A stretch of 64,000 nt of DNA. Source: Diplonema japonicum (Eukaryota > Protista > Euglenozoa: Diplonemea). The stretch is taken from assembly GCA_964019335.1 (NCBI GenBank), contig OZ025676.1, positions 1-64,000 on the forward strand, written 5' to 3'. The translations under genes and the position numbers were made by a program. The notes below the pieces were generated by a model. The model worked only from the letters and a program-made list of their open reading frames with translations, did not search any database and was not told the origin of the DNA. Below are positions 4,034 through 27,670 of the stretch, piece after piece. The first letter of the stretch is position 1, and each line of letters opens with the position of its first letter.

Positions 4034-4161
4034 TATATGAGTCAAAGGAAGTCTTTGTGAGACGCCCCCTTGTTCTCATCTTCTACCTGCACCTGTCCCC
4101 TTTCAGCAGCGGTTTCTCCTCCTTTGGTGGTCTTGCTGGCCTTCTCCCCAGCCTGGCCGTG
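4034..4161 (-). mobile_element. Short retroposon copy (128 bp, 5'-truncated)
   Basis: Near-identical to 13244..13369; flanked by A-runs on both sides (putative TSD). Confidence 0.75.
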
Positions 4162-4279
4162 AAAAAAAGATCCAAAAAAAATCCACAAGCGCACAGTTAG
4201 TGGGAAAGAAATAAGGTAAGTGCTGCTTTGCGGTGGAAAAGTGTGCATGTGTGCGTTTACGTTCTTCAGCTTCCAACAG

Positions 4280-5665
4280 CTACAAGATACCCATGAGACG
4301 TTTCTCTTTTGGGGTAAGGCTAAACTTCGTAACACGCAGCACCTGCTCTGTGTCCCCATCCCTGCTGCTAATGGTAACATCGCCAGCAGGGTCGTCGACA
4401 AGGATACTCCACGGCATCGACTCCTCACGGTGGAGGGAGGAGAGCCCTTCTAGAAACTCCCTCACGGCACTCTGCGAACCTTGCCCCATGATCATTTGCA
4501 TGTTTTCCTGTACCTGCTTCTGATGCTCTGCAAGGAATCCCCCAATAGTGATAGGTCTGCCTGCTGTAATGTGGCTGCTAAAGTCTACTTCCACCTTCGG
4601 TACCTCAACTGTCGCCTCCCTTGAGTGGAGCATAACACGTGAGAGGTCTTCTTTGCAGGTCACCACTAATTCTACCCTTCTGCCAGGCTTCGAAACGTCC
4701 TCCTGACTCAGCAGTGACGCCGTGTCCAGATACACAGAGGACATCGACGACATCCTGTCAGCGTAGCCCTTCAGATCTTCAGACCACCGTAGCTGATGTG
4801 CTAGATATGCAAGTGCCGCGTCGCAGTCATCAGGGACATAGATATCCCTCCCACGCCCATACTTCAGACCGACATCCTCACCAACCTTCATTTTGCTGAT
4901 GACCATCCGGTAGCACGTGGACGGTACCTCGTTGGGGAGCTCACTCAGGGGTGCCACCGTCAAGCTTGTTCCCACAACCAGAAGGAGATCCATATCTGAG
5001 TTCTCAGTCAAGCTGGCAGCGTAGCTGTCGTCAAGTGCCTCGCCGTAAAGTACTACGTCAGGGCGCATTCCTTCCCTACCGCATGACGTGCACAACATGG
5101 GCTCTGTTTTGTCGGGTGCTGTCGTGTCTTCTCCAGTAATGTCTTTCACTTTGTGCCGCAAATGATCGACAAAAGTAGCGAAACTCTCTTCCTTCCTGCA
5201 GTAGTGACAGCTTATAGTCGTCATCTTTCCGTGCACATTAAAGACCTTTTCCTTGCTCACTCCCGCTTCTGTCTCCAAGCAGTCGACGTTTTGCGTATAG
5301 ATTTTCGTGAGGAGACCGTGCTCCTCCAACAACTTGAGCATGAAATGCGAAGCAGTAGGCTTGAGCACCTTGTCTTTCAGCTTTAAAGAAAAGTCGCGCT
5401 TTACCTCCAGAAATGGCAGCTGACACTCCTCAAATACCTCCTTCGACACAACGCGTGATGGCTCCTCTGCGATGTAAGCCTGCTGCGCAGCAGAAGTGGA
5501 CAAGCGCGCAACATCTAGAGTATTGTAAAGGCCTTTAGCCGAGCGGAAATCGTTGATACCGCTGTTAACGCTGATCCCCGCACCTAGCAAGACACCTATG
5601 TTCTTGATGGTGCCATCTTTGATCTTAGCAGCAACGTCCTCTACAGTGTACAAACGCGGGAGCAT
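4280..5665 (-). CDS. Class I sirtuin (SIRT2/Hst2-like NAD-dependent deacylase) fused to a C-terminal ZPR1 A/B-like domain
   Basis: GAGIS..SGI.DFRS, YTQNVD, HG, CxxC...CxxC, RPDVVLYGE, GTSL. Tail has EDLSRVMLHSREATVEVPKV...ITIGGFL...SILVDDPAGD. Confidence 0.9.
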   Translation of the reverse strand: MLPRLYTVEDVAAKIKDGTIKNIGVLLGAGISVNSGINDFRSAKGLYNTLDVARLSTSAAQQAYIAEEPSRVVSKEVFEECQLPFLEVKRDFSLKLKDKVLKPTASHFMLKLLEEHGLLTKIYTQNVDCLETEAGVSKEKVFNVHGKMTTISCHYCRKEESFATFVDHLRHKVKDITGEDTTAPDKTEPMLCTSCGREGMRPDVVLYGEALDDSYAASLTENSDMDLLLVVGTSLTVAPLSELPNEVPSTCYRMVISKMKVGEDVGLKYGRGRDIYVPDDCDAALAYLAHQLRWSEDLKGYADRMSSMSSVYLDTASLLSQEDVSKPGRRVELVVTCKEDLSRVMLHSREATVEVPKVEVDFSSHITAGRPITIGGFLAEHQKQVQENMQMIMGQGSQSAVREFLEGLSSLHREESMPWSILVDDPAGDVTISSRDGDTEQVLRVTKFSLTPKEKRLMGIL

Positions 5666-5713
5666 TCCTGTGATGACAAGTTATTGAGTAGAAAGAATGA
5701 AATGAATAGAAAA

Positions 5714-6742
5714 CTACAAACTACCCAGTAGGCAGCACCTACTGTTGCCCTGCTGATAAGCAGCTGCTATCATATTTGAAAACTGTTCTGGTGATACGCG
5801 CCCGTCGGGGCTGAATTCATTTACTACAGAGGCGAGAAAGTCACTGGAAATTGAAGAGGACAGGTGCTTGCGCAAATCACTGTATCTGAGGTACGTTTTG
5901 CCAGGCTGCTTGAACATGTGGTACATCTCAAGTATCTCCTTTGCATCGCGCTCGTCGAAGTTGTCCATCCACGTGGGATGCACCACAGCAGTCGAGGGGC
6001 CGCCCCATTTGTTAATTGCCCAGTTCAGGTCCCTGGTTGATGCCTCAGTGAAGAAGCACCTTAGCATCTCCAAGTAATCTATAGAGCCGCTCCCGTCGGT
6101 GTCCAACTTTTCAAATGTTTCCTTGTCGATCTTCAATCCCGTCAGGTCCCCCAAGTCCTGCATCTCGTCCCAGTCAAGGGACCCGTTCCCGTCGTTGTCG
6201 ATGGCCTCGAAGCACCCCCGGATCCTGGTGTACTCCGCCTTTGTAAAAGGCAGATATGGCTTGGAACGTGTCCCTTTCGGCTTTACTCGGGAATGCCGTT
6301 GTGCCTCCTTGTCGGCATTGTGCAGCACCGTAGCTAGAGAAGCCTTCCTCTTCAGCTGCTTGGCGACATCTAGCAATGTAGCGATGCCTTGCACAGGCCG
6401 CTCCTTGAGGCCCTGCTTTGAACTAAAACCCGGCAACGGAGGCAACCGCATGCTGTGCTCCATACTCTTTTTCTGAACAGTAGCCTGCGTCACCCATATA
6501 GGTGGGAGCTTCACCCTGGTCTTCACAGGAGTCGGGCCTGTGTAGTCCCACTTGTGCGTGATTTTCTTTTTATTCTTTGCACCTTGGCCCACACCTGTAC
6601 AGTATGCCTCGACTTCCGAGAGAAGGCATTGCATGTATCCTGTGCGGCATGTGCACCTGCAGCTGCACTGGTGGCAAAAAAACGAAAATGGGGGTAAATA
6701 ATAGAGAGGAAGGCACCTTTTGTGGCACGAGTCAGTCTGCAC
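5714..6742 (-). CDS. EF-hand calcium-binding protein (5' end and first exons uncertain)
   Basis: Two canonical EF loops, DNDGNGSLDWDE and DTDGSGSIDYLE, plus a degenerate C-lobe. Confidence 0.8.
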   Translation of the reverse strand: MQTDSCHKRCLPLYYLPPFSFFCHQCSCRCTCRTGYMQCLLSEVEAYCTGVGQGAKNKKKITHKWDYTGPTPVKTRVKLPPIWVTQATVQKKSMEHSMRLPPLPGFSSKQGLKERPVQGIATLLDVAKQLKRKASLATVLHNADKEAQRHSRVKPKGTRSKPYLPFTKAEYTRIRGCFEAIDNDGNGSLDWDEMQDLGDLTGLKIDKETFEKLDTDGSGSIDYLEMLRCFFTEASTRDLNWAINKWGGPSTAVVHPTWMDNFDERDAKEILEMYHMFKQPGKTYLRYSDLRKHLSSSISSDFLASVVNEFSPDGRVSPEQFSNMIAAAYQQGNSRCCLLGSL

Positions 6743-7695
6743 ACTGCATTTTCTTAAAGAAGCACATAGTGTTATGTATAAAAAGGAACGAGAAATAATA
6801 AAAAAAAAGATATTCTGGCCACCGTAAGCACCAAAGCATTAATAACATAAAAGGCTGGGAGTGTAAATGGAGACGGAAAGGAGGGGCGGAAGGAAGGGGA
6901 GAAAGCGCTACAATCACCTCAGCAACAGGCCTTCCACACGCCGCAGGATAGTGTTGCATTCAGATGTGAGAAGCAACAAAAGGGGATGTTTTCGGTGGCA
7001 TAATAGAAATAGTCGGTGGGAGGGGAAGTCGTGTGCAAGCAGTAAGCTGTAAAGCCTCAGGGTGGAGAGGGGGCGGAGAGGATGTGTTTCCCTTCTTTTC
7101 TTGTCTTTTTTGTATTTCTTTCTTATTTCCTTGTCTTTTTTTTTTTTCTCTTTTTTTCATTCAGAGAGGAGAGAGAAGAGAGGGAATGGCGTAAATAAAA
7201 GAAAAAAAGCAAAGCCGTAAAAAAAATTATAAAAAATAAAAAACCATACTTGAAACCCGTCAAGGGGGGCGAAATTTTCCCATGTTCCTTGTTTTTTTAG
7301 CATTGTCGACCTGGCCTTTTCTCCATATGGCGTATCTTAACAACCCCGAGAAATTGACGATAAAAGTCGAGATCACCTATATGGCCTCTCTGAAACTTCC
7401 TCATGGGGTCTTAAGTATGAAAAAATTATAAAGAAAAAAAATCTCTCGTTTAGATCGCTGACACACCTTCAAAGCAAGGTACTGTTATACAGCTTTTGGT
7501 TGCACTCACTCCTGAAGGTGCCAGCTTCTTACGCTTTGGCCCGCATCTTTGCAAGAGAGACAGCAACACAACGAAAGGAAGAAAGATGCGGTGGGAAGGA
7601 AGAAGTTAATAAAAGAAAGAAAAAGAAGCGATAAAGCTTTTCTGTTGTTTGTTTGTTTGTTTTTGTTTGTTTGTTTGTGGTTCCCCTGTTTTGCT

Positions 7696-7731
<36 letters not shown>

Positions 7732-8493
7732 TTTCTTTGTAGTTTAGGAGGGAAAGAGAGAAAGAAAAGAGAAAAAAAAATAACAGAAAGGATAAGACGG
7801 CGCAAGTTGTGGCAGTATCCCACAAAAAATCTTTTTTTCATGTATCAGCTATAAAAAATCGGTGGAATAAAATCGGTGGAAAAAAAGGCGACAGCAAAGG
7901 TTCAAGATTTTTGAATACATATTTCCAAAAAGCTTCTTTTTTTTTTTTTTTCTTGAAGCAAGTCCAGTCCCACCTTTTTCTTCAATAACCTATACATAGA
8001 ACAAAAGGAAGGGGAAGGGGTAAATTATTTTTGCCCATAGTTTTTGGTTTCTTTTCTTTTTTTCTTATTCTTCACCTTTTTTTTTTTTTTTTTTTTTTTG
8101 TATTTTCGGAAAAATTAAAAACTCAGGGGGAAAAAAGGGGGGGGGGGGACGGTGCGAAGTAGTGATAAAGCGGAACAAGACCTTGCCTAAATTTTCTTCT
8201 TTTTCCTTCCATTTCTTGACACGCCTCACTGCTTGAGAAACAAAAAATATGTCCCTGACTACGCAACATTGCAGTGAAACAGATGCTTGCTCAAACCCGA
8301 GGGGAGATTCACCTCCCCTGCAAACTTAGGTTTTTCTTTCTTTCTTTTTTTTTTTTTTTCCTTCTTGCATTGATCTTTTCTAGTTCTTCGCAGTTCGTTG
8401 CATTGCGAAAACCAATACTATTGCTTTTGGTGAAACAGTCACAGATCTTAATGCACCCACCTCGGGCCTGTCTTCGTAGGCCGAGTAAAATAA

Positions 8494-8543
8494 TATATGA
8501 GCTAAAGGAAGTCTTTGTGAGACGCCCACTTGTTCTCATCCAC
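8494..8543 (-). mobile_element. Short retroposon copy (50 bp), TSD AAATAA
   Basis: Same terminus (TATATGAG...GTCTTTGTGAGACGCCC) as the 4034 and 13244 copies; AAATAA at 8488-8493 and 8544-8549. Confidence 0.75.
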
Positions 8544-8944
8544 AAATAATATTATATCTTTTGCTCACACACCTTCCCTCAAAAAAAAGGTAAGAAAAAA
8601 TAAAACAATAAGAGAGGAAGGGGAGAGAAAAAACAGCATAACACAAGGGAAGGGCGGGGGGAGAAAGAAAAACATTTACTTTCTTTTGTTTTTCCCAGCA
8701 CTGCAAAAAAAAAAAAGAAAAAAAAAACACTGTTGTAATATTCATTTCTTTTTCTATTTCTTTTATTTGACCTACAGTACAAAATCTTTCGTTAACATAA
8801 GGTAGTAGGGGGTGGGTAGGGGCCCTATTTAAGCACTTCTTTTCGTCCAAGTTGGGATTGACAAAAATGCAGAGTCAATTCTTGATACATGTGGAAGACG
8901 ATGGTGGTGAAGCGATAGCAACCTGACCTACCAAATAAAAAAAA

Positions 8945-8985
8945 TATATGAGTTAAAGGAGGCCGGTGTTGGCGGCGCCCTTTGG
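8945..8985 (-). mobile_element. Short retroposon copy, subfamily variant (41 bp), A-run TSD
   Basis: TATATGAGTTAAAGGA terminus shared; stem sequence changed with compensation; A-runs on both sides. Confidence 0.6.
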
Positions 8986-10362
8986 AAAAAAAGGGCAATT
9001 GGGGTAATAATTGACATGCAAATGCGAGAACAACAACCCAAAGAGAGGGATATAAAAAAATAAATAAAACAGTGGATGAGTTGTCAAATTAGCCTGCAGC
9101 AGGCTAAGCCGAACAAAGCTGTCATTACTTTTTCTTTTTTGCTCCAGCAAAGTAATAAAAGTCGATGTCACATGCAAACCCCATGTGGGCCGCAGGCCAT
9201 AAAAGAGGGTTCACTTGAGCTCCTGCAAATACTTCTAAATTATAAAGGGACTGCCATTTCTGACACCGAAGGGGGAGAGAGTAGGCGGAAAAAAAAAGAA
9301 GAAGAAAAAAAAAGGAAAAAAGGGGGACAGGGATAATGGTAAGAAGAAGGGCAAAATATGCAGTTGTATTGGGTCCACCTGTTATACAAAATAGTCCCCC
9401 CCCCCCCCTTTACTTTTCATGGTTTTTCCCCCCCTTCCTACGTTCTTTCAGGGCAAGCCTAAAAAAATAAACTCCTCGTATCTCTAATCTGACTCAGCTG
9501 CTGGTTATTTGGAGGAAGCAACTTTTAATATTTCAATCCACAAAGCACGCGGAAAGAACATTCTCAGCCCCCCCCCCCCCCCCCCCAAAGGTCAGATTAG
9601 AAATTCGAACCGTGTACAGGTCGCGACCCACCAAACCAGCCTTTTTGAACAAAAGGAAAAAACTCAAAGTAAAAGACAACCACATGAGGACAGGACCTCA
9701 TAAAAACAGGCTCCCACAGGTTTCTCCGACCTCGACAGCCCCTTTGAGACATTTCGGACTTTGCTTGACGGGTTTAGAGATATGAGGCGTAAAAAGTCTA
9801 AAGGTACATGAAAAATTCAAAGTAAAAAACATGCAACCGTAATAGTATGAAGAATAAAAAAGGGAAAGAAAAATCAAGCTTTGAAGCTTGAGAAAAACTA
9901 CCCATAAGGTACGGAAAAGATACATTTTAAAGCGAAAAATAAAAATAAAAAACGTTTATCATTTTCTTTTTTTTTTTCCTTCTGATCCTTTCTTTCTGCT
10001 TTCTTTTTCTTTTTCTCGTTTCCAATTCCCCTTCTTGCCAAGCCGAAGGAGGGCTGAGTGTGGTACAAAAATGGGAAGGAAAAATTAAAATATGGCTACC
10101 CAGCTGAAAAGGGGCAAACGAAGTTGCTAAAACCTTATCGCCAAATGGCCAAGGCTCCTTGTTGTCTGGTAAACTTCAACTGAACACCTGCCATATGACA
10201 AAAAAAAGAAGAGAAAGAGAGAGAAAGATAGAACCCCAAGGTAATGCTAGGGGGTGGACTTAACCAGCTTTTGTGCACAACTACATGCTTTTTCTTCTTT
10301 ATTTTCTTTCCTTTTTCTGAAGAACGAAAAGCGAAGGCGGACAAAAGAAAATAAAAAGGAAG

Positions 10363-12024
10363 CTAGAATATCTTTTCCTTGAAACGGGTGACGGGAGGGG
10401 CGACAGGTGGTTTCCCTACCTGCGGCCTAATCATCGTTTCTGGCGAGATACACATGAGTGGTGTGGTTGGTGGCGTGAGGACGGAGTCGTCCACGGAAGA
10501 AACCTGCGGCGACGACAGGCCCTGTTGTGTCGTGTGAGCAAGGCTTGTGGAGTAGTCTACCTGTGAGGACTCGGGTGTTAGTGTCGAGGTGTGGAACTGT
10601 GTTACGTCGTTGCGGTGCAGGGCATGTGGCCTGTGCAGGGTGCTGCAGTCTGAGATGCATACTTTATTGTGGCAGGATAGACCTGCGGCGCGAGGACATC
10701 CTGCTGGATAGCCTTAAGTACAGCAGCAGCTCGCCCCTTCGGGGACGACTCTCCATCCATTTTGCACGGGTGGAGCAACGCCTTCGGCGACGGCGCCAGG
10801 GACGGTCTTCTCTTTCCACACTGCAGTGTCCATTAAGCTTGCACTATCTGTACATACCTCATCCTCCAGCTCCTCTAGCAGCGGTGGCGGTGAGTGCGAG
10901 ATCGAATTCGAGACGGAACGAGGTAACAGGAACTCGCACGGGTCGATGTGCTCCATGATGTCGATCTCACTGTCCTCGACCGTGTCCACCTCTCGCTCGA
11001 TCTTTCTGATGGCATCCTCTGCGAGGTCCAGGTGTACGGAGTCCACATAGGCATAAATCGTCACAGACTGCGTCAGCGTCATCTCTCCCCTTGGTGGCGG
11101 CTCTACAAACAGCGACCCCTGAGTGCATTGCTTTCATGACTTCCACATACCTGTTCTCTGGGAAGGATGGACCTACGCGCCTTAATAATGGCGCTTGCTG
11201 CTGCAGTGCTCACTCGGATAACACGCTTCGACACACCGCTCTGGCTCTGCATCGACAGCAGGTAAGCGATGGCCGACTCAACGACGTGCTGTGTGCTGTG
11301 TGCGGCGTTATGCAGCATACCTGCGGTCCGTAGATGTCAACACACTCGTCCACAGGACGGGAGATGACGAAGGCACCGGTTGTCTCTGTTAGATGCTTCA
11401 CGGAGTTGATCACCTCGAAACACCGACGGCGTGAAGACTTCACAGTTCTCTTGTTTCCAATGAACAAGTTGTCGAGCACGCCGTTAGCATACACAGGATC
11501 GAACCTCCCCACGATCTTGGCTTCAATGTTCATGTCGGCGAGGCCTTTGTACCTCGAGTCCCCCCTGCTCAGTCTCTTTCTTGAGAGCTCTACCAGACCT
11601 GGAGGCACGTTAATAATGAGTTCAGAATGCGGTCCAAGCTGCTGCTCCACCCACGCTTTGTGCTTGTGGAGCAGGCGCGGGGGCAAGGCGTGGCGGAAGT
11701 TCTTCTCTTCGAGCGTCTCGTTAGGATTGGTGGCAGGTGGCACGTACTTGTCGAGTTTCACGATCATTGTCTTGCCCCCCTCCGCAGGTGTGGGGACGAA
11801 TGCAAAGCCCTGCGTGATGGGCGTGGACGTCGGGCTCAAGACAGGGCTAAGGTAGCCACTTTGCTGGCAAGCGAACCTGGCCCCCTGGTCGACGGGGCTC
11901 ATGGGAGGTGATGCGACTGCAGTGTTTTAATTCTAAGATGAAATATACCTTGCAAGGAGCACGTGCTGAATACAGGCTGGTTTATCAGCGGCGACAGCAC
12001 CAAGGGCGTAGGAGTTCCTTCCAT
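10363..12024 (-). CDS. Multi-exon protein with possible degenerate KH-type RNA-binding domains
   Basis: Five short GT-AG introns join the ORF pieces in frame (MEGTPTP...IYGPQ|HVVESAIAYL...KEKIF*). The KH call rests on weak motif resemblance. Confidence 0.6.
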
Positions 12025-12079
12025 TGCTAAGAGTGTAACCTGTGATGCTTCAGTGAGAAGTCATGTCGCATGGAAATAA

Positions 12080-12420
12080 CTATTTCTTGTCGGTGTCCCA
12101 GACCGCTCTCTTGTTATCTTTTACCAAATCAGGACGTGCAATGTTAACCTGTGAACAGTAATAAGTGTCTGTCATCATACCTTCAGCACTTTTCCATACA
12201 ACTCAGCGCCATTCATATTCTCAATTGACGCAGAGGCATCCTCTGCTTGCTCCATCTCAACAAACGCAAACCCCTTGTGCCGCGATGATGTGGGGTTCTC
12301 TTTGGGCATATTCACAGGCAGGACTATGTCACCAAATGGGCGAAAGGCGCCCTCCACAATGTCTGCTGTCACCTCCTCAGCCAGACCACCTACATACAGT
12401 ACTCGCTTGTCATCTGCCAT
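12080..12420 (-). CDS. Stand-alone RRM protein related to the cyclophilin E (PPIE/Cyp33) RRM; intron 12149..12180
   Basis: KRVLYVGGLAEEV...FGDI...HKGFAFVE...MNGAELYGKVLK|VNIARP...AVW; no cyclophilin domain. Confidence 0.88.
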
Positions 12421-12522
12421 GTTTACCTGCGGTGATCTTACGGCGTGTACGGTGCAGTGGTATGCAATAAAACATCAACAAACTAAACAAATCAAGTCTC
12501 TGTACATCTTAAATGGTTGCAT

Positions 12523-13187
12523 CTATTTGCGGTAGCAGGCGTTGGCCTTGCTGACAGCCGCGAGAGACAGGCCCTGCGTGCCGCTTCTGCGCGATTTGTT
12601 GGGGTCAACGAACCTGCTCGAAGTGACGACAGCGGGCCTAACGCCCATATTGTGTGCCTTCATTGGCTGTTTCGGTGCAGCCAGCGAGGAGAGTCGTGCA
12701 GACGACCTCGAGACGTTGCTCCTCGTGCTCCTGTTGCTCTTGTTGCTTCGCAAAGAGTTCGACCTTGTTTTGTCGTCCCTCTCCGCACCGACAGAACCCG
12801 CCCTCCCTCTCCTTCCCATGCTGTCCGTCCTCTGACCCGGTAGTTGCATCTCTACCCGCATTTTATCCCTGCTCCTCAAGTCACTAGCCTTCAACGCCGA
12901 CTGCTCTTTGTTTCCTGTGACAGGATGTTTTTTCTTAAGCTTGCATACCTCGTACAGGTGCACGCGAGAAGTAGTAGTCCTGCGTGTTTGGTTCCTCTTT
13001 GTTTCTCAGAGCCCTGTTGTTATTATCAATGCATCATTGGCAATTCATACTTCAAAGTCAACGGGATAGCTGCTGTATTTCCTGGTGTCGTGAAGCTTCT
13101 GGAAGCTCTAGGAGAAGCCTCCTTGCCCTTCATCTGCGTGATGAATGCCGCAAGATCCGCAGCTGTCTCCAACTTCGTGCCCGCCAT
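12523..13187 (-). CDS. Basic, Ser/Arg-rich hypothetical protein (2 introns)
   Basis: MAGTKLET...; two GTATG introns restore a continuous frame. Confidence 0.65.
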
Positions 13188-13243
13188 GTTGTGTGTCCTG
13201 TGAAGTGAATAACGCAGGGTATTGGTTTGGAATAGATAACTAA

Positions 13244-13515
13244 TATATGAGTTAAAGGAAGTCTTTGTGAGACGCCCCCTTGTTCTCATCTTCTACCTGC
13301 ACCTATCCCCTTTCAGCAGCGGTTTCTCCTCCTTTGGTGGTCTTGCCGGCCTTCTCCCCAGCCTGGCCGCTCTTTCTCTTCGTTCTCTCGCCCATTGTCC
13401 TTTCAACGCCTCTAGGTCATGCTTGGTCTTCGGTGATGCAAATATCGCCCTCCTGTTCCATCCGATCACCGCCTTTGTCCTCCCGATGGACCGTAGTGTG
13501 TGCACCCTTGTGCTC
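13244..13515 (-). mobile_element. Longest retroposon copy (272 bp), TSD AACTAA; carries the 3' end of an ORF (…STRVHTLRSIGRTKAVIGWNRR…GDRCR*)
   Basis: AACTAA at 13238-13243 and 13516-13521; 3' 126 bp shared with the 4034 copy. Confidence 0.8.
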
Positions 13516-13540
13516 AACTAAACTACCGTTGTGTGTCGCA

Positions 13541-15453
13541 TTAAAGAGTGTACACCAACTGTTTTCTTTCAGACAAGATGGTGCTCTGCGCCTCCAGTCT
13601 AATCCGCTCCAAGGAGTTTTCTAAGTTGCTAATATGAGCTTGTTGGGCTGTTTTGTGCTCTGATCGAACACGACCAACCTTCACCCATTGCCGCTTTCTG
13701 TGGATTTCTGCCAGCCTGAGGTTAGGGTGCTCGGACGTGATGCGCTTCGTCTTCAGATTGAGGTACTGCTTTGTGCCATCTGACTGTGTTTGCGCCGACC
13801 ATTCGGAGTCCAAGGGTACCTCCGTCAGGCACACTTTTGTCATCTTTTCTTCCCACATCTTCCACTCCTTCTTAAAGTTCGATTCTTCATCCTGCACCGC
13901 CCTTCTTGCTCTAGCAAGCTCAGTTTCTAAGTTAATAACACCCCCCGCGTACTCCCTCATAGATCGTGCTGTTTTCCTGTCTTCGGCAATGAAGGACTTC
14001 AGCAGCAGCTGTTCTTGGTGCCGGATCTTTACCTAAAAGCATATTGGGCACTTGCTAACATACCGCTCTTAGATCCCGCATAACAGTTACTCGGTACCTC
14101 CGTACGATTGAACCTAGCAGCACACGCTGCAGAACCATCACAGCCCGTTGCCTTATTGCACAGGGCTTCCTTCCCTGCTGCCACCCTCTGAACACCTTTT
14201 GGATCTTCACACACGCCACGCACATCATAGGCAACGATGTCATGTCTGTTGTCGCCACCGTGTGCTCCAGTTGCTGCGTGCGTTTCTTAAGGAAAATTGA
14301 AAATTGATACCTGTCTGTAGCGTGCATCGTCAAGAAGGCCTTCCTTTCGACAGGATGCAACCCATTTCCTGGTGACTGTTCTCCAGTACTTTCGTTTTCG
14401 CCACCACCGCTGTATTCTGAACGAGGCTATGTGCCGCGATAATGGTGCTGGTGCCTTTTTAGGCAATTTCAAGTTCGCACCCTTCGCTGGCCCCTTGGTG
14501 CCCTCTTCCAACGTTGACGGTGTGATGGTTCTGGGTTTGTGAGCAGTGCCAAGATTGGGCAAGTGTGGAGAAGGGGCACGTGAGCTGTGCGTTGAGGCCG
14601 CATGGAGCTTATCTGTCTTTGCTGTGCCATTTACTTCGTTCTCCTTTGCTGCAGGGAGCATGGATTGCTTGTTATTGTGCGACTGCCTAAATGCTTGAAT
14701 CTTCTGTAACGTGATGCCAGCCTTCTTAACTTTCAGCAAGCAAGACGCGTCCATATTATTCCGTTCCACAGCACTTTCTGCAGCAGCCATCCAGTCTTTG
14801 CGTTGCTGCGCCATTCGGCTGCAACAGTGGATGAAAGGGTCCATGTCGGTGGCATGTGACTTGCCTATCTTCTTTCGCTTCATGTTAATTTCACATAAAT
14901 GAATTAACTGCGACATGTCATTAAGTGCAGAGAAGAGCAGAGGGTCGTAAGCACTGCTTGAAGTCAGAAGGGATTCGATTTTCTTGCGTGACGCTGTGGC
15001 GGCTTCGGCCTTATGATCTACAATTCCCCTCCAAAGGTTATCTCCTGCGCAAGAGTTGTAAGGGTTTCTTTGAAGTGATGCCGTCGTCAGTGAGTACACG
15101 GTACCTAGCTCCTCTTCCTCGATCCCTGAAAGCTCTGCCGTGCTGCCCTCCCACAGCAACTGACCGGACGGGACCGAGCCTATGCTCTGCCTCCCAGACA
15201 TCTGCATGTTACTGTCCTGCCTTGCAATTAGGCTCAACGCGCCCACCTCTTGATCGACGCGCCACTCCTCCTTGTAGATCATCCGCATGACCTCACTATC
15301 CCCCAGCGTGCCTTGATGTATTTGCTGAATGTCTGACTCTCTCTTGCATCCCATCCTTGCGAGCTTGTCGTATTCGCACCATTGTCGGCTTTTGTTTTGG
15401 AACTCTGTCTTCTGTGCATTCAAACCTATCGAGTCATGACATTTCTTCGACAT
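13541..15453 (-). CDS. Coiled-coil protein with IQ motifs and a C-terminal WW-like motif (multi-exon)
   Basis: RIQRWWRKR and KIQKVFRGW; SEWSAQTQSDGTKQYLNLKTKRITSEHP. Confidence 0.7.
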
Positions 15454-15539
15454 GTCCTGTTGAAATTGAGCAAGGCATCAAGAAACAATAGAGTACATGG
15501 TACATGGTACAAACATTATTACAACATAACAACAGTGTA

Positions 15540-17176: not shown

Positions 17177-17271
17177 CCCTGAGTGGTGTGGCAATATCAT
17201 TAAGTGGATAACAATGAAGTACCACCAGAAGGCAGCATATGCGTCATCGGAAGATGCTTCGCTCGCTGCCG

Positions 17272-17784: not shown

Positions 17785-17892
17785 TTTGTGCACACTTTGA
17801 AACAATTCTTTTTTTCTTTTTTGATTCGATGGTGCGACTCGAGAAAAAAAAGGACACGGACGTAGCAACCCCAACAGTGACTACGGACCATG

Positions 17893-17923
<31 letters not shown>

Positions 17924-18002
17924 GCAAAAAAAATGAAAGAAAAAAATGACTAAGACCACACAAAAAAGCTTAGCATTTTTCAGGTAAATGGACTCATTAC
18001 AG

Positions 18003-18972: not shown

Positions 18973-19078
18973 GGTGCCCTGAAGTGTAGTAAATGCGAAA
19001 ACTAAATAGCGAAAAAGACCCAAAACCCAATTTCATCGTGACCGTGTAACCTACCTCACATCATTACGCCATGTGCAT

Positions 19079-19279
19079 CTAACCGATCTTTTCACTGCAC
19101 TTAGCAGTCTTGCACCACTCTACAGCCCCTCCAGGCCGAGTCAACGGACCTCTGTTCTGCTTAAACCGATACCCACGCACTTTGCACGGTTGCTGCTTGC
19201 TCCCAACGCCCAGCCCTGGCCCTGGCATCTGCATGCACACATCTCCCAGCGATCCTGTGTACACCTTAGACCATACCAT
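19079..19279 (-). CDS. Small hypothetical protein (66 aa)
   Basis: ATG follows CAACAG|GA, like other predicted acceptors; coding-like composition; no recognisable motif. Confidence 0.4.
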   Translation of the reverse strand: MVWSKVYTGSLGDVCMQMPGPGLGVGSKQQPCKVRGYRFKQNRGPLTRPGGAVEWCKTAKCSEKIG

Positions 19280-19689
19280 TCCTGTTGTGAGGTAGTGCAG
19301 TGGACCATAAAGGAAAGGAATAATAATATTAAAGTAGGCATAGACAAAAGAAAAGGGGCAGAGCAGGAAGGCATTCGTTGAAGCCGCTCTTTTTTATTTC
19401 TCTTTTTAAGAATAAGAAAAACATTGAATAAAAAAACGAGAAAGAATAAAAGTAAAACTAAACCATAAGCTTAGTGAGCGGAAAGTGAAACTGTAAAGTT
19501 GCATTTTTTTTCTTTTTTGGAGAGAGAACAAAGAATGTATGCCGCAAGGGCTAGCAGCGGCGTGCGCAGAATATTCACACACAGTTAAGTTTGCAGCGAC
19601 CTCCTTCAAAAAGGTCGCGTGCATCTTGTGCGAAGCAAGTCGAACCCTCGGAACAGTATGTACAAGGAACTTGAGCTTGATCAAGTGGC

Positions 19690-22319
19690 TTAGTTGGCGG
19701 GAGGCTGACTCAGCACAACTTGGTAGTACCCAGATCCGATTGCTACAAACTGCGAGACCACCTGAACAGGCTGCATGGGAATAGCCACTACAGGAGCCAT
19801 TGAGACTACATTAACACCGTCCTTCAGCAGCTGCACACTATCAACACTGTCAATAGCTTCCACAGTCTTCGCCTCGGGTGCCTTGTATCTTGCTGCGTAC
19901 TGCGGTTCTGCCTCATAAAATGACTTTGCCAGTGGGTTGGCTTCCTTGCACGCCAAGTTTTGCTGTCCGTTCCAAAGGCCCCTCTGCAGTGTGGTCACCA
20001 GTCGCGTGTCGTCAGCGGTGTCGCAGCTGTGGCTGCTCTTGTCGCCCTCTGTGGTGTCTGACGCAGTGGGGAGCGTCACACTGCTGATGTTGTCGTCGAT
20101 GTTGCTGTTCACGCTGTTCGTGTCCTCATACGCACCAACCAAGTCGTCCACCTGGTTCTTGAAAGCACCCATGCCCTGCAGTTCATCATACAGCGACGAT
20201 GCAGTGGCGGGTGGGTTCAGAGGGAGCTCGAAGTCCGACTGGCATAGCACATTCATCGCCTCGAGCAGCCTGTGTGCATGAGTGACGTGATGACCCTTAG
20301 CATACCCTGGCAAGCACGTCGTCCCGTCTTCAGTGATGCTGTTTGTGTGGCTCTCAACTAGCGCCTCCCTCAGCTTCGGGCTTTCTACAGGTGTTGCGTA
20401 GGCATTCTTCGAGTAGTCTTCGATGCGCTGATCGATTGCACCCACCGTGACGTCTAGAGGGTACGCTAGGAGGGGCTTCCTACTCTCTGATGGCGATAGG
20501 ACAGGTGTGACAGGAGAAACGTCGTGTGGATGAACCACAACTGGCGGAGAAACTTCTAATTGCTTGACAGTACTTAGCTCTTCCGTCGGTGGGAGCTTTA
20601 CTTTGGGCTTCTTTTCTTTCTTAACCTTTTCTTCGTCTTTCTTCTTGGTCTTGTCCTTCGCTGTAACAGCTATCGGGCTCTTCTTTTCTTCTTCCACCTT
20701 CTGGGGCTTCTTGATATCCTTGCGGCGTCTCCTTGCATCTTCTTCGCGCCTGCAGGAGCTGAAGGGTTCCTCACTCACATACCTGTATACTTCTTCGAGA
20801 ACCTTCCTTGCGTCACGTTCCCTGTTCTCGTGAGTCTTCTTTGTGTTAGAGCTCCCTTTTGATTTCTTTTCGGCTTCTTTCTTGGTCTTGCGCACAGGTT
20901 GCAAAGGTTTTTTCAGTGGAACGTGAGGTGGTGCTTCAGGCTCTGGTTCTTGGACCTTCTGTTCTTCCTGTTCCTGTATGCAGGCTTCCTGTTGTTCTCC
21001 TGTTTGGGGTGGTATCTCCACTCCTACCATATATGTGGCCTCTTGCTTATGCATTCCCACCCACAGCCCGAGGTAGGGGAAGATCATCAACAACCCGTAG
21101 CCAATCGTTGAAGCCGAAACTATGTAATATAGCGTACCCTGATCCTGGTTGTTGCACCATCTTATGGAGCTACTTAGGGTAATGAGGGACAAACATGTTA
21201 CAGCCATCACACTGCTAGGCTTCTTGATGTTCTCTTTTTGCTCTTGTTTTTCAAAGTAGCAAGCAAGGTAAACGTTGAAGACGCAATCAGCCAAGTAGGG
21301 CAGGGCCTTGCGGGGGATAGTCGTGTAGATGAGTCCATTGATTGAAATCAGTGAAAGCTGTGTGTGCCACCCCAAGGCTTGGCCGGTGTCTTTTTGGCTA
21401 ACAGCCAAGAAGGTAGCCGCGATCGGGATTGCCGACAACAGCATACTTCCCAATGGAATGCTGCTGGCCAGGTCCACAGCAAGGAAGAAGCCCCACACGC
21501 AACATATTTTACACCACTCATGGCGGCTCCACTGTGTTCCGTTCTGGTGCCAAGATGACAAGAAAGCATCGACCTCCAAACACCTTGCTACAAAAGATGA
21601 AACGGCGGCGATCTTCGATATAGTGCCGAGAACAATGTTCTTCCTGTGCTCCGAAAACAACGAATCTGCGGGGCCGTGAAAGTCAGAAATACACATACAT
21701 GAATTCAGTAACACGGTGATAGAGAAGGCAGCAGTGTGCGACAGCATGAGGCTACGCAGCGTTAGCTTGTGGTCGGTGTGTGCGAGGTCAGAGATGTTGT
21801 TGCCAAGTAGCAGTGCGGTCACGACGAAGAGTGATGTGGGCCTCAGTGCCTTCGACTGCAGCAGGTGGATGAAGATTTGGAGGCATACCCATTCCAGTGC
21901 TGCAGCTAAAAGCAGCGCATCGGCCACGGCAGCCACCCAATGCTGCTCTACGCACGTAGCAACAGCCACCCAGATCAAGTGCTCAACTACATCAGCGGCG
22001 GAGAAAGGCAGCTCATCATACGAACAGATGACAGAGTGCAACAAAAACAGCGGGGGGATGAAACTACAAGTGAAATAGATATAAATATAGCAAAACATAC
22101 TACTGCACAGGTACACCAGTGTCGGAGATGAAGAGCGCGTTGACTAGCAAAATGATCGCAGCAGCCACGATGATCATGACACTCTTTAAGGGGTCCTGCA
22201 CAGCGACCTCCTGTCCCCCGCGAGGGTACCCATGCACCCTGCCACAAGCTTGACAAGAACAACAATGTTCTTGGACTTGCGGTGCCAGACGGACAGCTGG
22301 AACCCGTCTGCGAGGCATA
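19690..22319 (-). CDS. Multi-pass membrane protein with a long charged, low-complexity C-terminal tail (5' exons uncertain)
   Basis: 808-aa open frame; hydrophobic N-terminal half, Lys/Glu-rich C-terminal half. Confidence 0.65.
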
Positions 22320-22404
22320 TAAAGTGTTAACCCTGTGGTACATTGAATACGCATGCGATGTCAACAATGATAACTAAGTATGATTATGATGACAGCTGTA
22401 ATAA

Positions 22405-23903
22405 CTAATGATTCCTGAAAACTGAGGACACGTCGTCGGTCACGCAGTAAACCAGCGGCTTACCCTCGTCACCAGAACCCAGCAGATACGTGGGCTTATC
22501 TTGCGAAAATTGCAGCGAGAAAACTCTCCCTTGGCCCAGGTTACGCGAGGAAATACCAACCGGCGAGTCGCCTCTCACATCCCAGAGCTTGACGTTAGCG
22601 TCAGCACCTGCGGTTGCCACGAGGCCGTTCACGGCCGGATTCACTGCAATGTTAGCTTCACCTTCGTGTGCCTGCACGCTCCACATGGCAGCACCTTGGT
22701 TCCTCAAGTCAAACTGCTTCAGCTCACCACTCTCCAAGGAGATCCAGACTTTCGTCTCATCAAAGGGTGAGACGGCAATGCACTGTGAAGTTTCTGGCGT
22801 TCCTTGCCAAAGCATACCTCTGGAGTGCCTCCGATATTCATGGAGCTCTGCGCTTTCTGAGTACGGCAGTCAATAACCTTTGCAGTTTGATCAAAGCTCC
22901 CAGTCATCAGAGCTTGCGGGTTCTGCTTGAACCACTGCAGACATTGCACGGGTGCCTGTTTTCTGTGATAATGACCTTCATCATACCTGATGCTGCTTGA
23001 AAGTGTGGAGGTTTTCTCCTGTAACCATGTCCCATAGCTTGACAGTCAAATCCGCACTGCCGGATGCAAGCACTCTCTTCACCTCTGTATTCCATCTGTG
23101 GGTTGTTGACATCGTGGTACATTTTGGGGGCATACTTCGCGCAAAGGACGGCATCTTTGTGGGATGACTTTTTGAGCATGCTTGGCGACAGCGTTTTGGC
23201 TCTGTAGTTGTCGGACTCCCTCTTGCAGCCGCCCAGGGTGACCACCGGGTCGGGGGCGTCGAGGACGTCGAGGTTCCAGACTTCGATGAAAGGGAGGAAC
23301 GTGGTGACGGCAGCATAAGAGCCGTCTTCAACAGCTGCGCCGTCTTTGCCCGGGCCCGTGGAGGACCAAGCGACGCTGAGGGGGATGGCGGGGAGGGCGA
23401 TGTCGTGGTGGAGGTAGATGTTGTCCTGCTCATCGTCGTAGATGTACACCTCAAGCGCCGAGGACCCCCCCTGCCTTTGATGCGTGCACATAAACACCAA
23501 GTCATCGCTCTTGATGTGCAAATCCTCTTGTTCACTCTCATCATCCGACTCTATGTCCTGGACACCGTCCGCACCTTGCACGGGCACGTCTAGCATCGGG
23601 CCGTCATATTCGTCGTCCTCATCCTCCTCCTCCTCAATCTCCTCCACTTCCTCATCTACTTCCACGTCCTTGTTGGAAAGCTCCTCCTCCCCCTCCGAGT
23701 CCATTTCCTGATCATCTTTGTTCTCCTCCGATGCAAGCATAGCTATCTTGCTCCTTGCTTTTTGTATCTCATCTGCTGTTGGTTGGTATTTCTCCGGCAC
23801 CTGTGTGAAGTACGTATTGCTCAACTGACGTTCACCATACCTTCTGACAGGCACCGCGCGGGATCCACACCCCACATGTCAACCCTGAAGGCCCTTCCGC
23901 CAT
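22405..23903 (-). CDS. PWP1: Periodic tryptophan protein 1 (WD40, ribosome biogenesis), multi-exon
   Basis: LTCGVWIPRGA, acidic linker, LEVYIYD...NIYLHHDIALPAIPL, IEVWNLDVLDAPDP, WD repeats. Confidence 0.88.
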
Positions 23904-23958
23904 GTGTATAATTACCTGATGGGTTATGTTGCGGTAGCAAAAAAACGCGGATTAACAA

Positions 23959-25320
23959 TCACTGTGCATGGTACAGTACTGATGTGTCTACGTCGTCCGT
24001 CCACGATGGTTTGAAGTTCCCATACGGGTTCTCCCACTGCCATGACAGCCTGTCGGCTGTGACAATGCGCATGTTGATCAAAACGGTTTTCCCTTTCAAT
24101 TCCTTCAAATGCTGCAGCGCAGCACGTGCCTCACTCGAGATGTCCGATATTCTCTGTATAAACGTGTCAACGTATTGCCTTGCATACCGTCAAGACACTC
24201 CGCTTCAGGTAGTCTGAGGCCACCGTCACCAGACAGTCGATTCTTAACTCGCCCCGCTGCATAGTCCATCCGAATATTTTCAATTGGCAGTACTGTGGAA
24301 ATGTGGTTGTGTCTTTTTTCTACATACCTTACTCGACATCCATTTCTCTGTGTTAACATCTTTGATGACCTTCTCGAAAATCACATTCTCAGCTAATTCT
24401 ATCAAATTCTGATTTGTTGTCCTCCCTTTCTTGAATCGCCACGATCCCGGCTGACTCAGCGTCGTCAGCAACCCACGGAGTTGAGTGTAACTTGATGGTG
24501 TATCCCTTGCAGTCGCAACGACCTTCTTGAAGTGTGTTCTTGACTTAAGAATTTGCTCTTTCATGTCCTGAAGCGCCACTTCTTTTTGTTCTCGGTTTCG
24601 CGTCCTCGTGCTGTCGCGGTCGGACCGTGTCACCACTGCGATGACAGGCAGCCGCTTATTGAGAGCGTTCAAACGGTTGTCAAGTCCCTCGAAGAGGTCG
24701 TAGTTGTCTCTGTGCAGCACGGCACCACTTGCCGAGTCGCAGGCCACGATAACAGCATCCGCGTGATACAGCGACTCCCATGCTGCTTCTGTCGTCAGCA
24801 TGCGCCGTTTGGCTTCGATGGTCCGTTCGGTACTGCTCTTGTTGTTGATGTAGTGCAGGGGTGAGATAGGGGGGGTGTCAAGTAAAAGTATTTGTGTATT
24901 ACTAGCAGTGACGCAGCCGAGCATCCAGCGCCGTGTGGAATAAGCACGCGTCGAGACGGGGCACACGTGGTCCCCAATTAAATTGTTCACCAAAGACGAC
25001 TTACCGGCATTGCTCAGCCCCAGCACCGCGACCCGCAATACACGAGCGTTCTCGGGCTGATCCGGCTCCTCCACTACCACCATTTTCTCCGCCGCTTCCA
25101 CTGCAGAAGTGAAATTCTGCTTTTCATAAACCTTGCCCACCTCCTCCTTCCCCTTGCCGTACCCCGACATCACCCGCTGCTTTTGATGGTTTGCCCTCTC
25201 ATATGCTATTTCCAGCTTCTTTTGAACATCAGCACCTATCGCCTTTTCTGAATTCCATTTCGGGCCACCCGATTGCCATCGCAGCCATCTTGACACAAGC
25301 TGCTGGTTCACCCTCTTCAT
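23959..25320 (-). CDS. Era-like GTPase (ERAL1-like, probably mitochondrial) with degenerate G3/G4 motifs; 2 introns
   Basis: LRVAVLGLSNAGKSSLVN, VSTRAYSTRR, TQILLLDTP, PGSW, IFEK; basic N-terminal presequence-like segment. Confidence 0.8.
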
Positions 25321-25385
25321 CTCCTGTTGGTGGACGTTTAAAATGCTATACAATAAAGCGACACAAAATCTTAAATTTAAACTTC

Positions 25386-27455
25386 CTAACGACTGAGCAA
25401 GGGCGTCTCTTCCTCAAGGTCGTCACTGTTCGTTGTGTCAAAGGGGAGAAAGGGCCCAATGAAAGCAGCAGGATAGTCCGAAACATCATAATCTGTGTCA
25501 GTCACCGCGCGAGGCTTCATGAAAAAGTCCTCTTCATCCTGCGACTCGTCAAAAATATCATCCAAAGTTAGACTTTTCTTATAAAGAAGAATGCTAATAA
25601 TAATGACAATAAGGGTCAGTAACAAAGACAACCCATCGGAGATAAAGGGGAACACAAAATAACTCGCGGCAGAACCAATACCGCTCCATAGCTTCATGTT
25701 TGCAAAAGCTGAATCCAACCATTTGGGGTGGCTCACGTACAGCGAAGCGTGGACAGCGGTGGCGGTACCCTGCCACACACTGAACCCCATGCCGTGGAGG
25801 ATATAAGCAAGCACCAGTGCTGGGGTGGTAAGGTATTGTGAAGGAAGAACGAGGAAAATAAGACACTCTAGAGACCAGGCAACAGTCCCGACAGTCATGA
25901 CCAACGGCCTACCTAGCCTCGATGCACAGAAAACAAAAATAGGAGAAAACAACGCAGCAGCAACACCCTGCAGGGCGACAAAATACCCTATTACTGACAC
26001 ACCATAGAGCGGTTTGACAACTTTCGCGTTGACGTAGTAGGACATTACAGCCACCATCATACCCATAGCCATGTTGCAGGGGACAAGGTACAGGATGCGC
26101 TTATCGAGAAACACCAACGACAATGTATCAGGATGTTCAGGGTGTCGGGTTTCCCATCGCGAGGGGCGCCCAGACAGCTTGTTCTTGCCATTCGTCGGCG
26201 ACGAACAACTGCTCGACCGCTTCCTGCCGTCGTCCTCGCGCAGCATTGTTATGATGCTATTAAGTGTCTCCAGTGGCACAGCTTGATTGTCGTGGGCCCT
26301 CATCCTCCGAGGGCACGGCATGCTTCCTGACAGAGCAGTGGCCCCGGCAGCTGCCAGCAACAGCGACACATACATAACATTTGCACCATACATCGAGAGC
26401 AGCAACGACGACAGGAGGTAGGCACACGGGATAGAAAGCTGGAAAATACTGTTGAAAAGACCTGAGAGGACGTCCAGAGCCTCCGCGTGCTTTACCTTCC
26501 TGTCTTCTGTTGCTGTTTTCACATTATCGATAATAGTCTTGCGGGTGTTGACTTTCGCGTGTTTAGCTGTATCTTGATTCTGAAAGCTCCGTGACACAAG
26601 CTCAGCTACCTTCTGATGATTGTTGCTGACAATGTACTGCTCTGCGGAGCGTGACAAGTAAGATCCTTCGGCTGTCCATAGCACGGCACCACCGGCTCCC
26701 GCTAGAAGGGAGAACAAGCACAGAAGCAGCTCTAGGAGAGTCGAAACATCATATGCGTTGCAAAGAGAGGTAGTTGCGATGTAGCAAACGAAAGAGCACA
26801 GGCCCAGCACTAGGGCGGGTTTGGGGGTCATGTAAGAAACTATTTGTGGCGAGCGCAGCGTGGTGAACGCGAAGCTGAGGTAGATTAGACCGGACGTGAG
26901 GGTACCTATTTTCATCCCCAACATTGCGGGTGCAATGGCAACAGTCGACACAAAGCAAGCCTCGACGATGCTGAAGCCCAAGGCTACAGTGCCAAACGAA
27001 ACGAGAGTTTGGAATTTCTTGTTGCTATTTTGCTTGATGTACATCGGTATGCTCTTGAAGTCGGGGTGATGGCCGGGGTAGAGCGAGCGAAAGCCGTATG
27101 TGCACATATTACCAGGGCCCATTACAAACACACCACCTGGCAGCTCCTCTTTCCTGTCACCTGTTGAGAGCATCATGTGAAAGATCAGAGAGTCTTCACT
27201 GGAGTCGATGAAAATGTCTCCACTAAAGCCTGATTGATTCTTCCATTTAATCGCAGCTTCTGTGCTCCCAGTGGTCACAATCACCGTTTGTAAATCATGC
27301 TCCGACAAGACGGGGATAGACGCTACCAAATCGCTAAACTGCTTTCTGTAAAAAAACCTGTATTCTAACTGCCTCACAAGTACTACTAACACCACCTTTT
27401 CATGCCACAATGATGTCACATCTCTAGGGCAACCTTTCTCGTCATAAATTAGCAT
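25386..27455 (-). CDS. UNC-93-like MFS membrane protein with an N-terminal peroxiredoxin-like-2 (AhpC/TSA_2) domain
   Basis: LLAGAGGAVLWTAEGSYLS and AFANMKLW (UNC-93). N-terminus DEKG...TSLW..KVVLVVLVR...IFID...LPGGVFVMGPG...PGHHP. Confidence 0.8.
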   Translation of the reverse strand: MLIYDEKGCPRDVTSLWHEKVVLVVLVRQLEYRFFYRKQFSDLVASIPVLSEHDLQTVIVTTGSTEAAIKWKNQSGFSGDIFIDSSEDSLIFHMMLSTGDRKEELPGGVFVMGPGNMCTYGFRSLYPGHHPDFKSIPMYIKQNSNKKFQTLVSFGTVALGFSIVEACFVSTVAIAPAMLGMKIGTLTSGLIYLSFAFTTLRSPQIVSYMTPKPALVLGLCSFVCYIATTSLCNAYDVSTLLELLLCLFSLLAGAGGAVLWTAEGSYLSRSAEQYIVSNNHQKVAELVSRSFQNQDTAKHAKVNTRKTIIDNVKTATEDRKVKHAEALDVLSGLFNSIFQLSIPCAYLLSSLLLSMYGANVMYVSLLLAAAGATALSGSMPCPRRMRAHDNQAVPLETLNSIITMLREDDGRKRSSSCSSPTNGKNKLSGRPSRWETRHPEHPDTLSLVFLDKRILYLVPCNMAMGMMVAVMSYYVNAKVVKPLYGVSVIGYFVALQGVAAALFSPIFVFCASRLGRPLVMTVGTVAWSLECLIFLVLPSQYLTTPALVLAYILHGMGFSVWQGTATAVHASLYVSHPKWLDSAFANMKLWSGIGSAASYFVFPFISDGLSLLLTLIVIIISILLYKKSLTLDDIFDESQDEEDFFMKPRAVTDTDYDVSDYPAAFIGPFLPFDTTNSDDLEEETPLLSR

Positions 27456-27503
27456 CTACTGTGCAACAGTGAAGGGTGGTAACACAACGACAAAAAAAAA
27501 TAA

Positions 27504-27670
27504 GAGATGAGATAACGCAGGTTCCTGTTATGGAACGCCCCAGTCTTTCCTTGTCTACCCCTTTCCCTTTCTGGGGCCTCGGTCCTTCTTTCCTGCCATT
27601 CTCAAAGTGTCTTCCCTTTTTTCTTTACCACTTCCTTGCCTAGTTTCTTGAGTTTCTTCTTGGAATTCTC
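27504..27670 (-). mobile_element. Divergent relative of the short retroposon family
   Basis: Purine-rich body, then GGGC-GTTCC-loop-GGAAC...TCTCATCTC on the minus strand. Same position about 40 nt upstream of an acceptor; TSD not clear. Confidence 0.4.

Follow-up and report, generated by a model that had tools for sequence, protein, structure and literature searches.

The first 64,000 nt of contig OZ025676.1 of Diplonema japonicum (assembly GCA_964019335.1; this whole stretch is called the window below) contain five short repeats between positions 4034 and 27670. The question raised by this locus is what these repeats are and which enzymatic machinery inserted them. The original prediction regarded them as one unannotated family of short, tail-less retroposons. 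The results presented here indicate that they are, very probably, dead-on-arrival, 5'-truncated insertions made by target-primed reverse transcription (TPRT), and that they derive from a young autonomous long interspersed nuclear element (LINE) of the apurinic/apyrimidinic endonuclease (APE) type and from a short non-coding element that borrows the machinery of this LINE.

Direct reading of the window confirmed the five repeats at their places, all on the minus strand, which is also the gene strand, with ragged 5' ends, short flanking duplications and the fixed 3' end ...CTCATATA. On the plus strand, each repeat starts with TATATGAG..., which equals ...CTCATATA on the minus strand. The 15-nt terminus CCTTTAACTCATATA, searched with up to two mismatches, was found four times in the window, always on the minus strand, compared with 0.04 occurrences expected from shuffled sequences. 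The exact extents of the copies were obtained by alignment to a full-length copy of the element, and the features were as follows (TSD, target-site duplication; UTR, untranslated region; SINE, short interspersed nuclear element).

4034-4161, minus strand: 3' fragment of the LINE, 126 nt (4034-4159), 96.8% identical to LINE positions 6046-6171, plus 2 untemplated nt (4160-4161)

8494-8543, minus strand: LINE fragment of 47 nt (8494-8540), 3' UTR only, 95.7% identity, plus 3 extra nt at the truncated end

8945-8985, minus strand: 5'-truncated copy of the SINE-like element, 37 nt (8945-8981), 100% identical to SINE-like positions 287-323, plus 4 extra nt

13238-13243, no strand: TSD AACTAA (TTAGTT in the element sense) on the 3' side of the element, abutting it; an exact 6-nt repeat of 13516-13521

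13244-13515, minus strand: 3' fragment of the LINE, 272 nt, 5'-truncated, 98.9% identical to positions 5900-6171 of the full-length LINE

13516-13521, no strand: second copy of the TSD AACTAA on the truncated 5' side, read directly and abutting the element

27495-27670, minus strand: copy of a third family, old or divergent, 76-77% identical to genomic relatives, with a T run after it on the sense strand

The raggedness of the 5' ends was thus upheld, and the predicted lengths of 128, 50, 41 and 272 bp were resolved into templated parts of 126, 47, 37 and 272 nt with 2, 3, 4 and 0 extra nt, respectively. The 272-nt copy comprises approximately the last 74 codons of the second open reading frame (ORF2) and the 49-nt 3' UTR of the LINE and ends with CTCATATA. 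The predicted flanking direct repeats were present as well: on the plus strand, A runs border the copies at 4034-4161 (4025-4033 and 4162-4168) and 8945-8985 (8937-8944 and 8986-8992), and an exact AAATAA duplication surrounds the copy at 8494-8543 (8488-8493 and 8544-8549). Two assignments had to be changed. The repeat at 8945, previously listed as a clear copy of the same family, matches the other clear copies in its final 16 nt only and belongs to the SINE-like partner of the LINE, and the repeat delimited as 27504-27670, taken as a divergent copy, represents the third family. Almost every long ORF of the window is encoded on the minus strand, and all repeat copies are located between ORFs.

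A parent encoding reverse transcriptase (RT), which the original prediction had proposed to look for as a test, was found in the genome (62.5 Mb in 132 contigs were searched). When the genome was searched with the 272-nt copy, 29 of the 30 best matches, that is, all but the window's own, extended upstream into LINE sequence. The full-length LINE is 6,171 nt long; eight sampled full-length copies measured 6,165-6,171 nt and were 99.8-100% identical, and a 2,036-codon open frame was intact in five of these eight. The element consists of a structured head of approximately 114 nt, ORF1, ORF2 and the 49-nt 3' UTR, which contains a small hairpin and ends with CTCA(TA)n. ORF1 encodes 585 aa; ORF2 lies in the -1 frame and overlaps the end of ORF1. 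ORF2 contains, in this order, a 2A-like sequence (...GIHPNPGP), an APE endonuclease, an RT and a CCHC motif. The endonuclease (Exo_endo_phos, PF03372, E 4.2e-12) occupies residues 633-869 of the long frame, N-terminal to the RT domain (RVT_1, PF00078, E 1.7e-25, residues 1231-1443), and a CX2CX12HX4C motif is located near residue 1755. In the PDB, the relatives found were L1 ORF2p (E 6e-21) and R2 proteins, and the ESM Atlas likewise gave generic RT and APE relatives only. No RNase H family was detected in the C-terminal 587 aa even at E values up to 10, and no integrase or transposase was found by Pfam in the parent element. Consequently, the LINE-derived repeats of the window do not form a separate short family; they are 5'-truncated ends of an autonomous LINE.

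The reading frame of ORF1 was determined by codon statistics trained on ORF2 or on host genes, with the ATG at nt 49 taken as the start. Over nt 49-1803, the log-likelihood of this frame was +165, compared with -61 and -129 for the other two frames. Because the sense strand is poor in T, long spurious frames stay open in it. The 'complete' ORFs of 1,743-1,924 aa reported for this LINE in the EukProt transcriptome of D. japonicum begin out of frame across ORF1, and the 1,916-aa transcriptome 'protein' is a chimera of an out-of-frame N-terminus and the real ORF2. The first approximately 580 residues of those ORFs, which are rich in G, R and E, are probably not a real protein.

Of the 55 protein matches to the APE-RT region, the closest were from D. 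japonicum, D. ambulator and D. papillatum. A second LINE subfamily was also observed; it is 76-81% identical in the body, shares an identical sequence over the last approximately 60 nt and contains a 1,067-aa frame with an RT domain. One of its copies adjoins a copy of the main subfamily.

The number of copies and the structure of their junctions were studied throughout the genome. The 36-nt LINE terminus (up to two mismatches) gave 329 matches and its reversed control gave none; this count pools the two subfamilies because the last approximately 60 nt of the second subfamily are the same. The 44-nt terminus gave 288 matches. The 5' end of the LINE was found only 16 times, so that approximately 5% of the copies are full-length. 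Together with the near-identity of the full-length copies, these numbers agree with the earlier view of an abundant and young family. Truncation points were scattered from 30 nt to 3.4 kb, and there was no preferred 5' end at 272 nt.

All 46 copies in the sample of junction pairs used for the duplication and tail statistics end with CTCA(TA)n, with the target sequence directly after it and no poly(A). The number of terminal TA units was two in 30 copies, three in nine, four in two, five in three, seven in one and twelve in one. The claim that the elements are tail-less therefore held in part: poly(A) is absent, and the copies in the window are untailed, but the family as a whole has a tail, which is a slipping (TA)n of 2-12 units. 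The predicted preference for T tracts was borne out, with 88% T within the first 8 nt of the flank. In 76% of the true flank pairs the duplication was at least 6 nt long, compared with 50% of the mismatched pairs; the latter value is high because T runs match one another. The duplications that are not homopolymers (TTAGTT, TTATTT, TTTATT, TTTTATTT, ATAAA, TTCTTTT and TTTTTTCT) are informative about length and put it at about 5-9 nt, in agreement with the 6-7 bp proposed earlier. A fixed 3' end, variable 5' truncation and short duplications in T-rich tracts constitute the signature of TPRT, as had been recognized from the window alone.

The upstream flanks end in a T run, after which 0-9 extra bases (A or CA in most cases) precede the element. 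Such extra bases were present in 16/16 full-length LINE copies and in the sampled full-length SINE-like copies, and approximately half of the truncated copies were without them. At 16/16 LINE 5' junctions, and at the majority of those of the SINE-like element, the base preceding G1 was A, in most cases with a T run before it (T-run, C/A, A, G...). An apparent polypyrimidine tract and AG consequently precede every full-length LINE copy.

The partner of the LINE is an element of 323 nt with a fixed 5' end (GGTGGTGGGG...), which was seen at twelve loci and contains stops in all frames. Its 36-nt terminus gave 477 genomic matches and the reversed control none. The sequence that it has in common with the LINE is limited to the last 16 nt, which are identical. 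Its insertions resemble those of the LINE in having flanking T runs, extra bases at the 5' junction, (TA)n tails and truncated 5' ends. ARAGORN found no tRNA head, and Rfam gave no match at E values up to 1; since no tRNA- or Rfam-type head was recognized, the element was named 'SINE-like'. The fold of the whole element was no better than that of shuffled sequences (z -0.48).

The head of the SINE-like element gave 826 matches, exceeding the 477 3' ends, and it occurs also inside a larger repeat, in which it is preceded by the invariant flank TTATCTTCTTTTTCAG and upstream conservation extends over at least 520 nt (85-95% identity). This larger repeat was located on contig C5 (739146-739682) and at about 190 other places, many less than 10 kb from contig ends and in both orientations. 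It looks like a subtelomeric repeat that may have captured one SINE-like copy and then been amplified. In the window, positions 1-121 and 1792-1866 are made of an 8-nt unit, GGGTTTGC, and the array that opens the contig is G-rich on the inward-running strand. At a euglenozoan telomere a TTAGGG-type repeat is expected, and the 8-nt unit at the contig start differs from it.

The third family comprises at least 208 genomic candidates, of which 40 were scored; they were 76-77% identical over query positions 31-206. The copy at 27495-27670 has a 41-nt terminus of its own that is unique in the genome.

The three 3' ends (LINE, SINE-like element and third family) have a common architecture, in which GGG(G)C is followed by a 4-5-bp hairpin and ...CTCAT..., and the 3' arm of the hairpin stops 17-20 nt short of the terminus. 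This hairpin pairs GTCT with AGAC in the LINE, GCCG with CGGC in the SINE-like element and GTTCC with GGAAC in the third family; of the four pairs common to all, three are changed on both sides with pairing kept. When the 3' ends were folded as single sequences, the result was significant for the SINE-like element only. This comparison of three sequences is suggestive of reverse transcriptases that may recognize their own 3' ends.

The original prediction noted no ingi/L1Tc-type 5' signature. The truncated copies in the window cannot show one, and the head of the full-length LINE can be fitted by hand to a fold like that of the hepatitis delta virus (HDV) ribozyme, with P1 at 1-6/73-78 (6/6 pairs), P2 at 53-59/108-114 (7/7), P3 at 60-62/70-72 (3/3) and P4 at 82-89/94-101 (8/8), a UCC-containing P3 loop, GG for P1.1 and a GCAAAC joiner. 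The SINE-like head was fitted in the same way (P1 1-7/72-78, 7/7; P2 GCUG/CAGC, 4/4; P3 4/4; a bulged P4; a CGAA joiner). The P1 and P2 sequences differ between the two elements with complementarity kept, and both heads have an HDV-like L3 (UCC...) and GG after P1. Both heads are plausible candidates for HDV-like ribozymes. A relic of the spliced leader was not recognized at the 5' ends, the 21 leader nt legible in an RNA contig matching neither the LINE nor the SINE-like head (best local score 5-6).

The 2A-like sequence of ORF2 reads ...QGIHPNPGP and is located 5 aa before the APE match. Counted from the candidate start methionines of ORF2, its NPGP is 40 or 64 aa downstream, within the 40-80 aa from the ORF2 N-terminus described in PMC3708506, where LINEs of the Ingi, CR1, L2, Rex1 and Crack groups also have their 2A sequences. 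Relatives from three Diplonema species have GDVHPNPGP, GDIHPNPGP, GDIETNPGP or GDVERNPGP at this place.

Taken together, these features suggest the following mechanism. The endonuclease would nick the strand opposite a T-rich hexamer to octamer, and the reverse transcriptase would recognize the 3' hairpin and begin on the terminal UAUA, with slippage adding TA units. Reverse transcription would mostly abort early and leave short 3' fragments. The RNA itself may arise from read-through in a polycistronic unit, its 5' end being freed by the putative self-cleaving, HDV-like head.

The LINE is apparently active. The full-length copies are near-identical and have open frames, the copies in the window are 95.7-100% identical to their elements, and a matching transcript exists: a protein from the EukProt transcriptome of D. 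japonicum is 100% identical over the APE-RT region of the LINE.

Several points weigh against this explanation or parts of it. The 46 junction pairs were partly biased to copies of at least 272 nt; most duplications lie inside T runs, where their length is unreadable, and the mismatched-pair control is itself high. A homologue of ORF1 was not found among 8,000 candidates, nor was a Pfam domain, and in the selection test, the ORF1 copies differed at just 1 and 18 sites, so that the split into synonymous and nonsynonymous changes was uninformative. Compared with the canonical GD(V/I)ExNPGP, the 2A-like sequence of the LINE keeps NPGP and I and has D and E replaced, and changes at these two positions are inactivating according to mutagenesis cited in PMC3708506. 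The motif is therefore treated as a mere candidate for 2A-type peptide-bond skipping. Rfam gave no HDV match to the LINE head, and the match of the SINE-like head to RF00094 scored 13.6 bits (E 8.9; gathering score 50) in a different P1 register. The transcriptome match could reflect passive read-through. Empty-site alleles were sought at 8200-13900 in four public runs; in each run, contigs reach into the 272-nt copy from either side, and no joint that skips an insertion was seen. Logan contigs, as used here, are interrupted at repeats and lose rare variants, and the absence of empty sites among them is no evidence of fixation.

The relation of the copies to host genes was also studied. At 33 of the 40 loci sampled, the long ORFs next to the element were on its strand, and at six they were on the opposite strand; within a contig, nearly all copies were on one strand, which LINE and SINE-like copies had in common. 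In the window, T runs were 1.5-2 times commoner on the gene-sense strand and equally common on both strands when runs of at least 10 were considered. This excess is too small for target supply alone to explain the bias, and selection against antisense insertions or coupling to transcription is needed in addition.

At the gene just downstream of the 272-nt copy, one RNA-like contig revealed a trans-splice acceptor AG at 13199-13198 (minus strand), 10 nt before the ATG at 13187. Its match to the window stops at 13198, and its next 20 nt correspond, on the minus strand, to the 3' end of a euglenozoan spliced leader (...CAGTTTCTGTACTTTATT). The acceptor lies 45 nt downstream of the 272-nt LINE fragment. 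In one RNA-like run, skips of 32-37 nt were observed at 12146-12179, 12913-12948 and 13012-13050, bounded by CT..AC on the plus strand and therefore by GT..AG on the minus strand. They are very short introns of the same gene, in agreement with the median intron length of 41 nt in D. japonicum (PMC12621601).

These observations bear on the possibility that the host keeps the repeats by selection as cis-acting modules, such as intergenic signals for RNA processing in front of trans-splice acceptors. All of the window copies are intergenic and in the sense orientation, the largest stands 45 nt upstream of a spliced-leader acceptor, and the 33:6 orientation bias is greater than the approximately 1.5-2:1 ratio by which T runs favour the sense strand. 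However, the sequences represent the end of a LINE coding region and its 3' UTR, they are randomly truncated, nearly identical to active copies and flanked by duplications, and no sign of conservation independent of the element was seen. A host function of this kind is thus very unlikely. Even less credit can be given to the idea of self-contained, short, tail-less, non-autonomous retroposons, for which the 272-nt copy would be near full length and the enzyme would be unidentified. The shortness of all window copies (37-272 nt), with a coding capacity of at most the end of ORF2, is in line with such a family, but the upstream continuation of 29 of the 30 best matches, up to 6,171 nt with APE and RT, refutes it for three copies, and the scattered truncation points do not define a 5' end at 272 nt. 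Remnants of a DNA transposon, a miniature inverted-repeat transposable element (MITE) or a solo long terminal repeat (LTR) could account for short length and flanking direct repeats, but they can practically be dismissed: neither terminal inverted repeats nor TG...CA ends are present, a solo LTR or MITE being ruled out by the missing terminal repeats, one end is fixed and the other ragged, and the parent encodes APE and RT.

With the repeats explained as truncated insertions of a LINE and its partner, a further and much more speculative proposal concerns the system as a whole, namely, that it is adapted to one-way gene clusters. Sense insertion in intergenic T tracts would provide host read-through, a ribozyme would stand in for a promoter, and duplication of T tracts would create new polypyrimidine tracts beside spliced-leader acceptors, each full-length copy gaining a T run and ...AG immediately in front of G1. 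We consider this proposal rather doubtful. If it were true, hundreds of sense fragments could affect the trans-splicing and 3'-end choice of neighbouring mRNAs. SIDER elements, which influence neighbouring mRNAs in Leishmania, would be a comparable case.

The original prediction had been framed by reference to ingi/L1Tc elements; the host is a diplonemid, so this frame is not directly applicable. The duplications of ingi/L1Tc are about 12 bp long and occur at a target motif of their own, whereas those of the Diplonema LINE are about 5-9 bp and lie in T tracts. Like L1Tc/ingi with NARTc/RIME, the Diplonema system combines, in a euglenozoan host with polycistronic transcription, a LINE encoding APE and RT with a short non-autonomous partner. 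It also resembles L1Tc/ingi in having a 2A-type motif directly before APE (PMC3708506) and a 5' head that can be fitted by hand to the HDV-like class, to which Pr77 belongs (PMC12278014). In contrast to the Ingi clade, its tail is (TA)n rather than poly(A), no RNase H was found and ORF1 is separate, so that it departs from three structural hallmarks of Ingi given in PMC12278014 (poly(A), RNase H and no ORF1). Unlike NARTc/RIME, the partner is not a deletion derivative and has just 16 nt in common with the LINE. No L1Tc, ingi or trypanosomatid proteins were among the 55 protein matches, which is weak evidence since the search was word-filtered. A trypanosomatid origin was ruled out, the closest proteins being from Diplonema.

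Other LINEs resemble the Diplonema element in part. In the eel, UnaL2 and UnaSINE1 (L2 clade) have a short common 3' end with a stem-loop and a tandem repeat, TGTAA, whose copy number varies, as slippage when reverse transcription begins would predict. The Diplonema pair likewise has a short common 3' end with a stem-loop and a variable-number terminal repeat, but its unit is TA rather than TGTAA, its target is a T tract and the SINE-like head is not tRNA-like; recognition of the hairpin is suggested by three sequences. R2, RTE and other ribozyme-bearing LINEs are similar in the untemplated nt at full-length 5' junctions and would be similar in their co-transcription with the host and in a 5' end at G1 of a nested double pseudoknot (fitted by hand here). 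Unlike R2, which is site-specific and uses a restriction-like endonuclease, the Diplonema element is of the APE type and dispersed in intergenic T tracts, and unlike the R2/RTE ribozymes, its putative ribozyme has an insert of 46 nt (LINE) or 43 nt (SINE-like element) between P1 and P2, and Rfam models do not pick up the putative fold.

The closest relatives found are unclassified LINE gene models of D. papillatum and transcripts of D. ambulator, which are 37-53% identical over APE-RT, several of them with GD(V/I)HPNPGP. The elements of D. papillatum are represented by about 2,500 automatically named gene models without boundaries, tails or targets (PMC10161547). Among the diplonemid and unassigned relatives of ORF2, an OTU-like cysteine protease (PF02338) occurs in some and RNase H in some, neither of which is present in the D. 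japonicum LINE described here. In the genome note of D. japonicum YPF1604 (62.3-Mb assembly), 'transpos' and 'retro' occur nowhere in the text (PMC13598402), and nothing was found in the literature consulted on diplonemid non-LTR elements beyond gene-model counts. In structure, the system is an APE-type LINE with a partner.

For the original observation, the outcome is mostly deflationary, since the copies in the window are ordinary truncated ends of a LINE and a SINE-like element. The family itself is new, but none of its features is without precedent. Diplonemids rank among the most abundant eukaryotes of the sea, and a defined, apparently active diplonemid LINE with its boundaries, target, tail and partner is useful for repeat annotation of the D. 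japonicum assembly. Fragments of this family occur in nearly every kind of intergenic T tract, and an ORF caller applied to the transcriptome has already been misled into a chimeric protein. The mixture of traits (a 2A-type motif, a possible ribozyme head, a repeat tail and sense-biased insertion) joins features of trypanosome, insect and vertebrate LINEs and makes this LINE and its partner a test case for the life of retroelements in polycistronic genomes.

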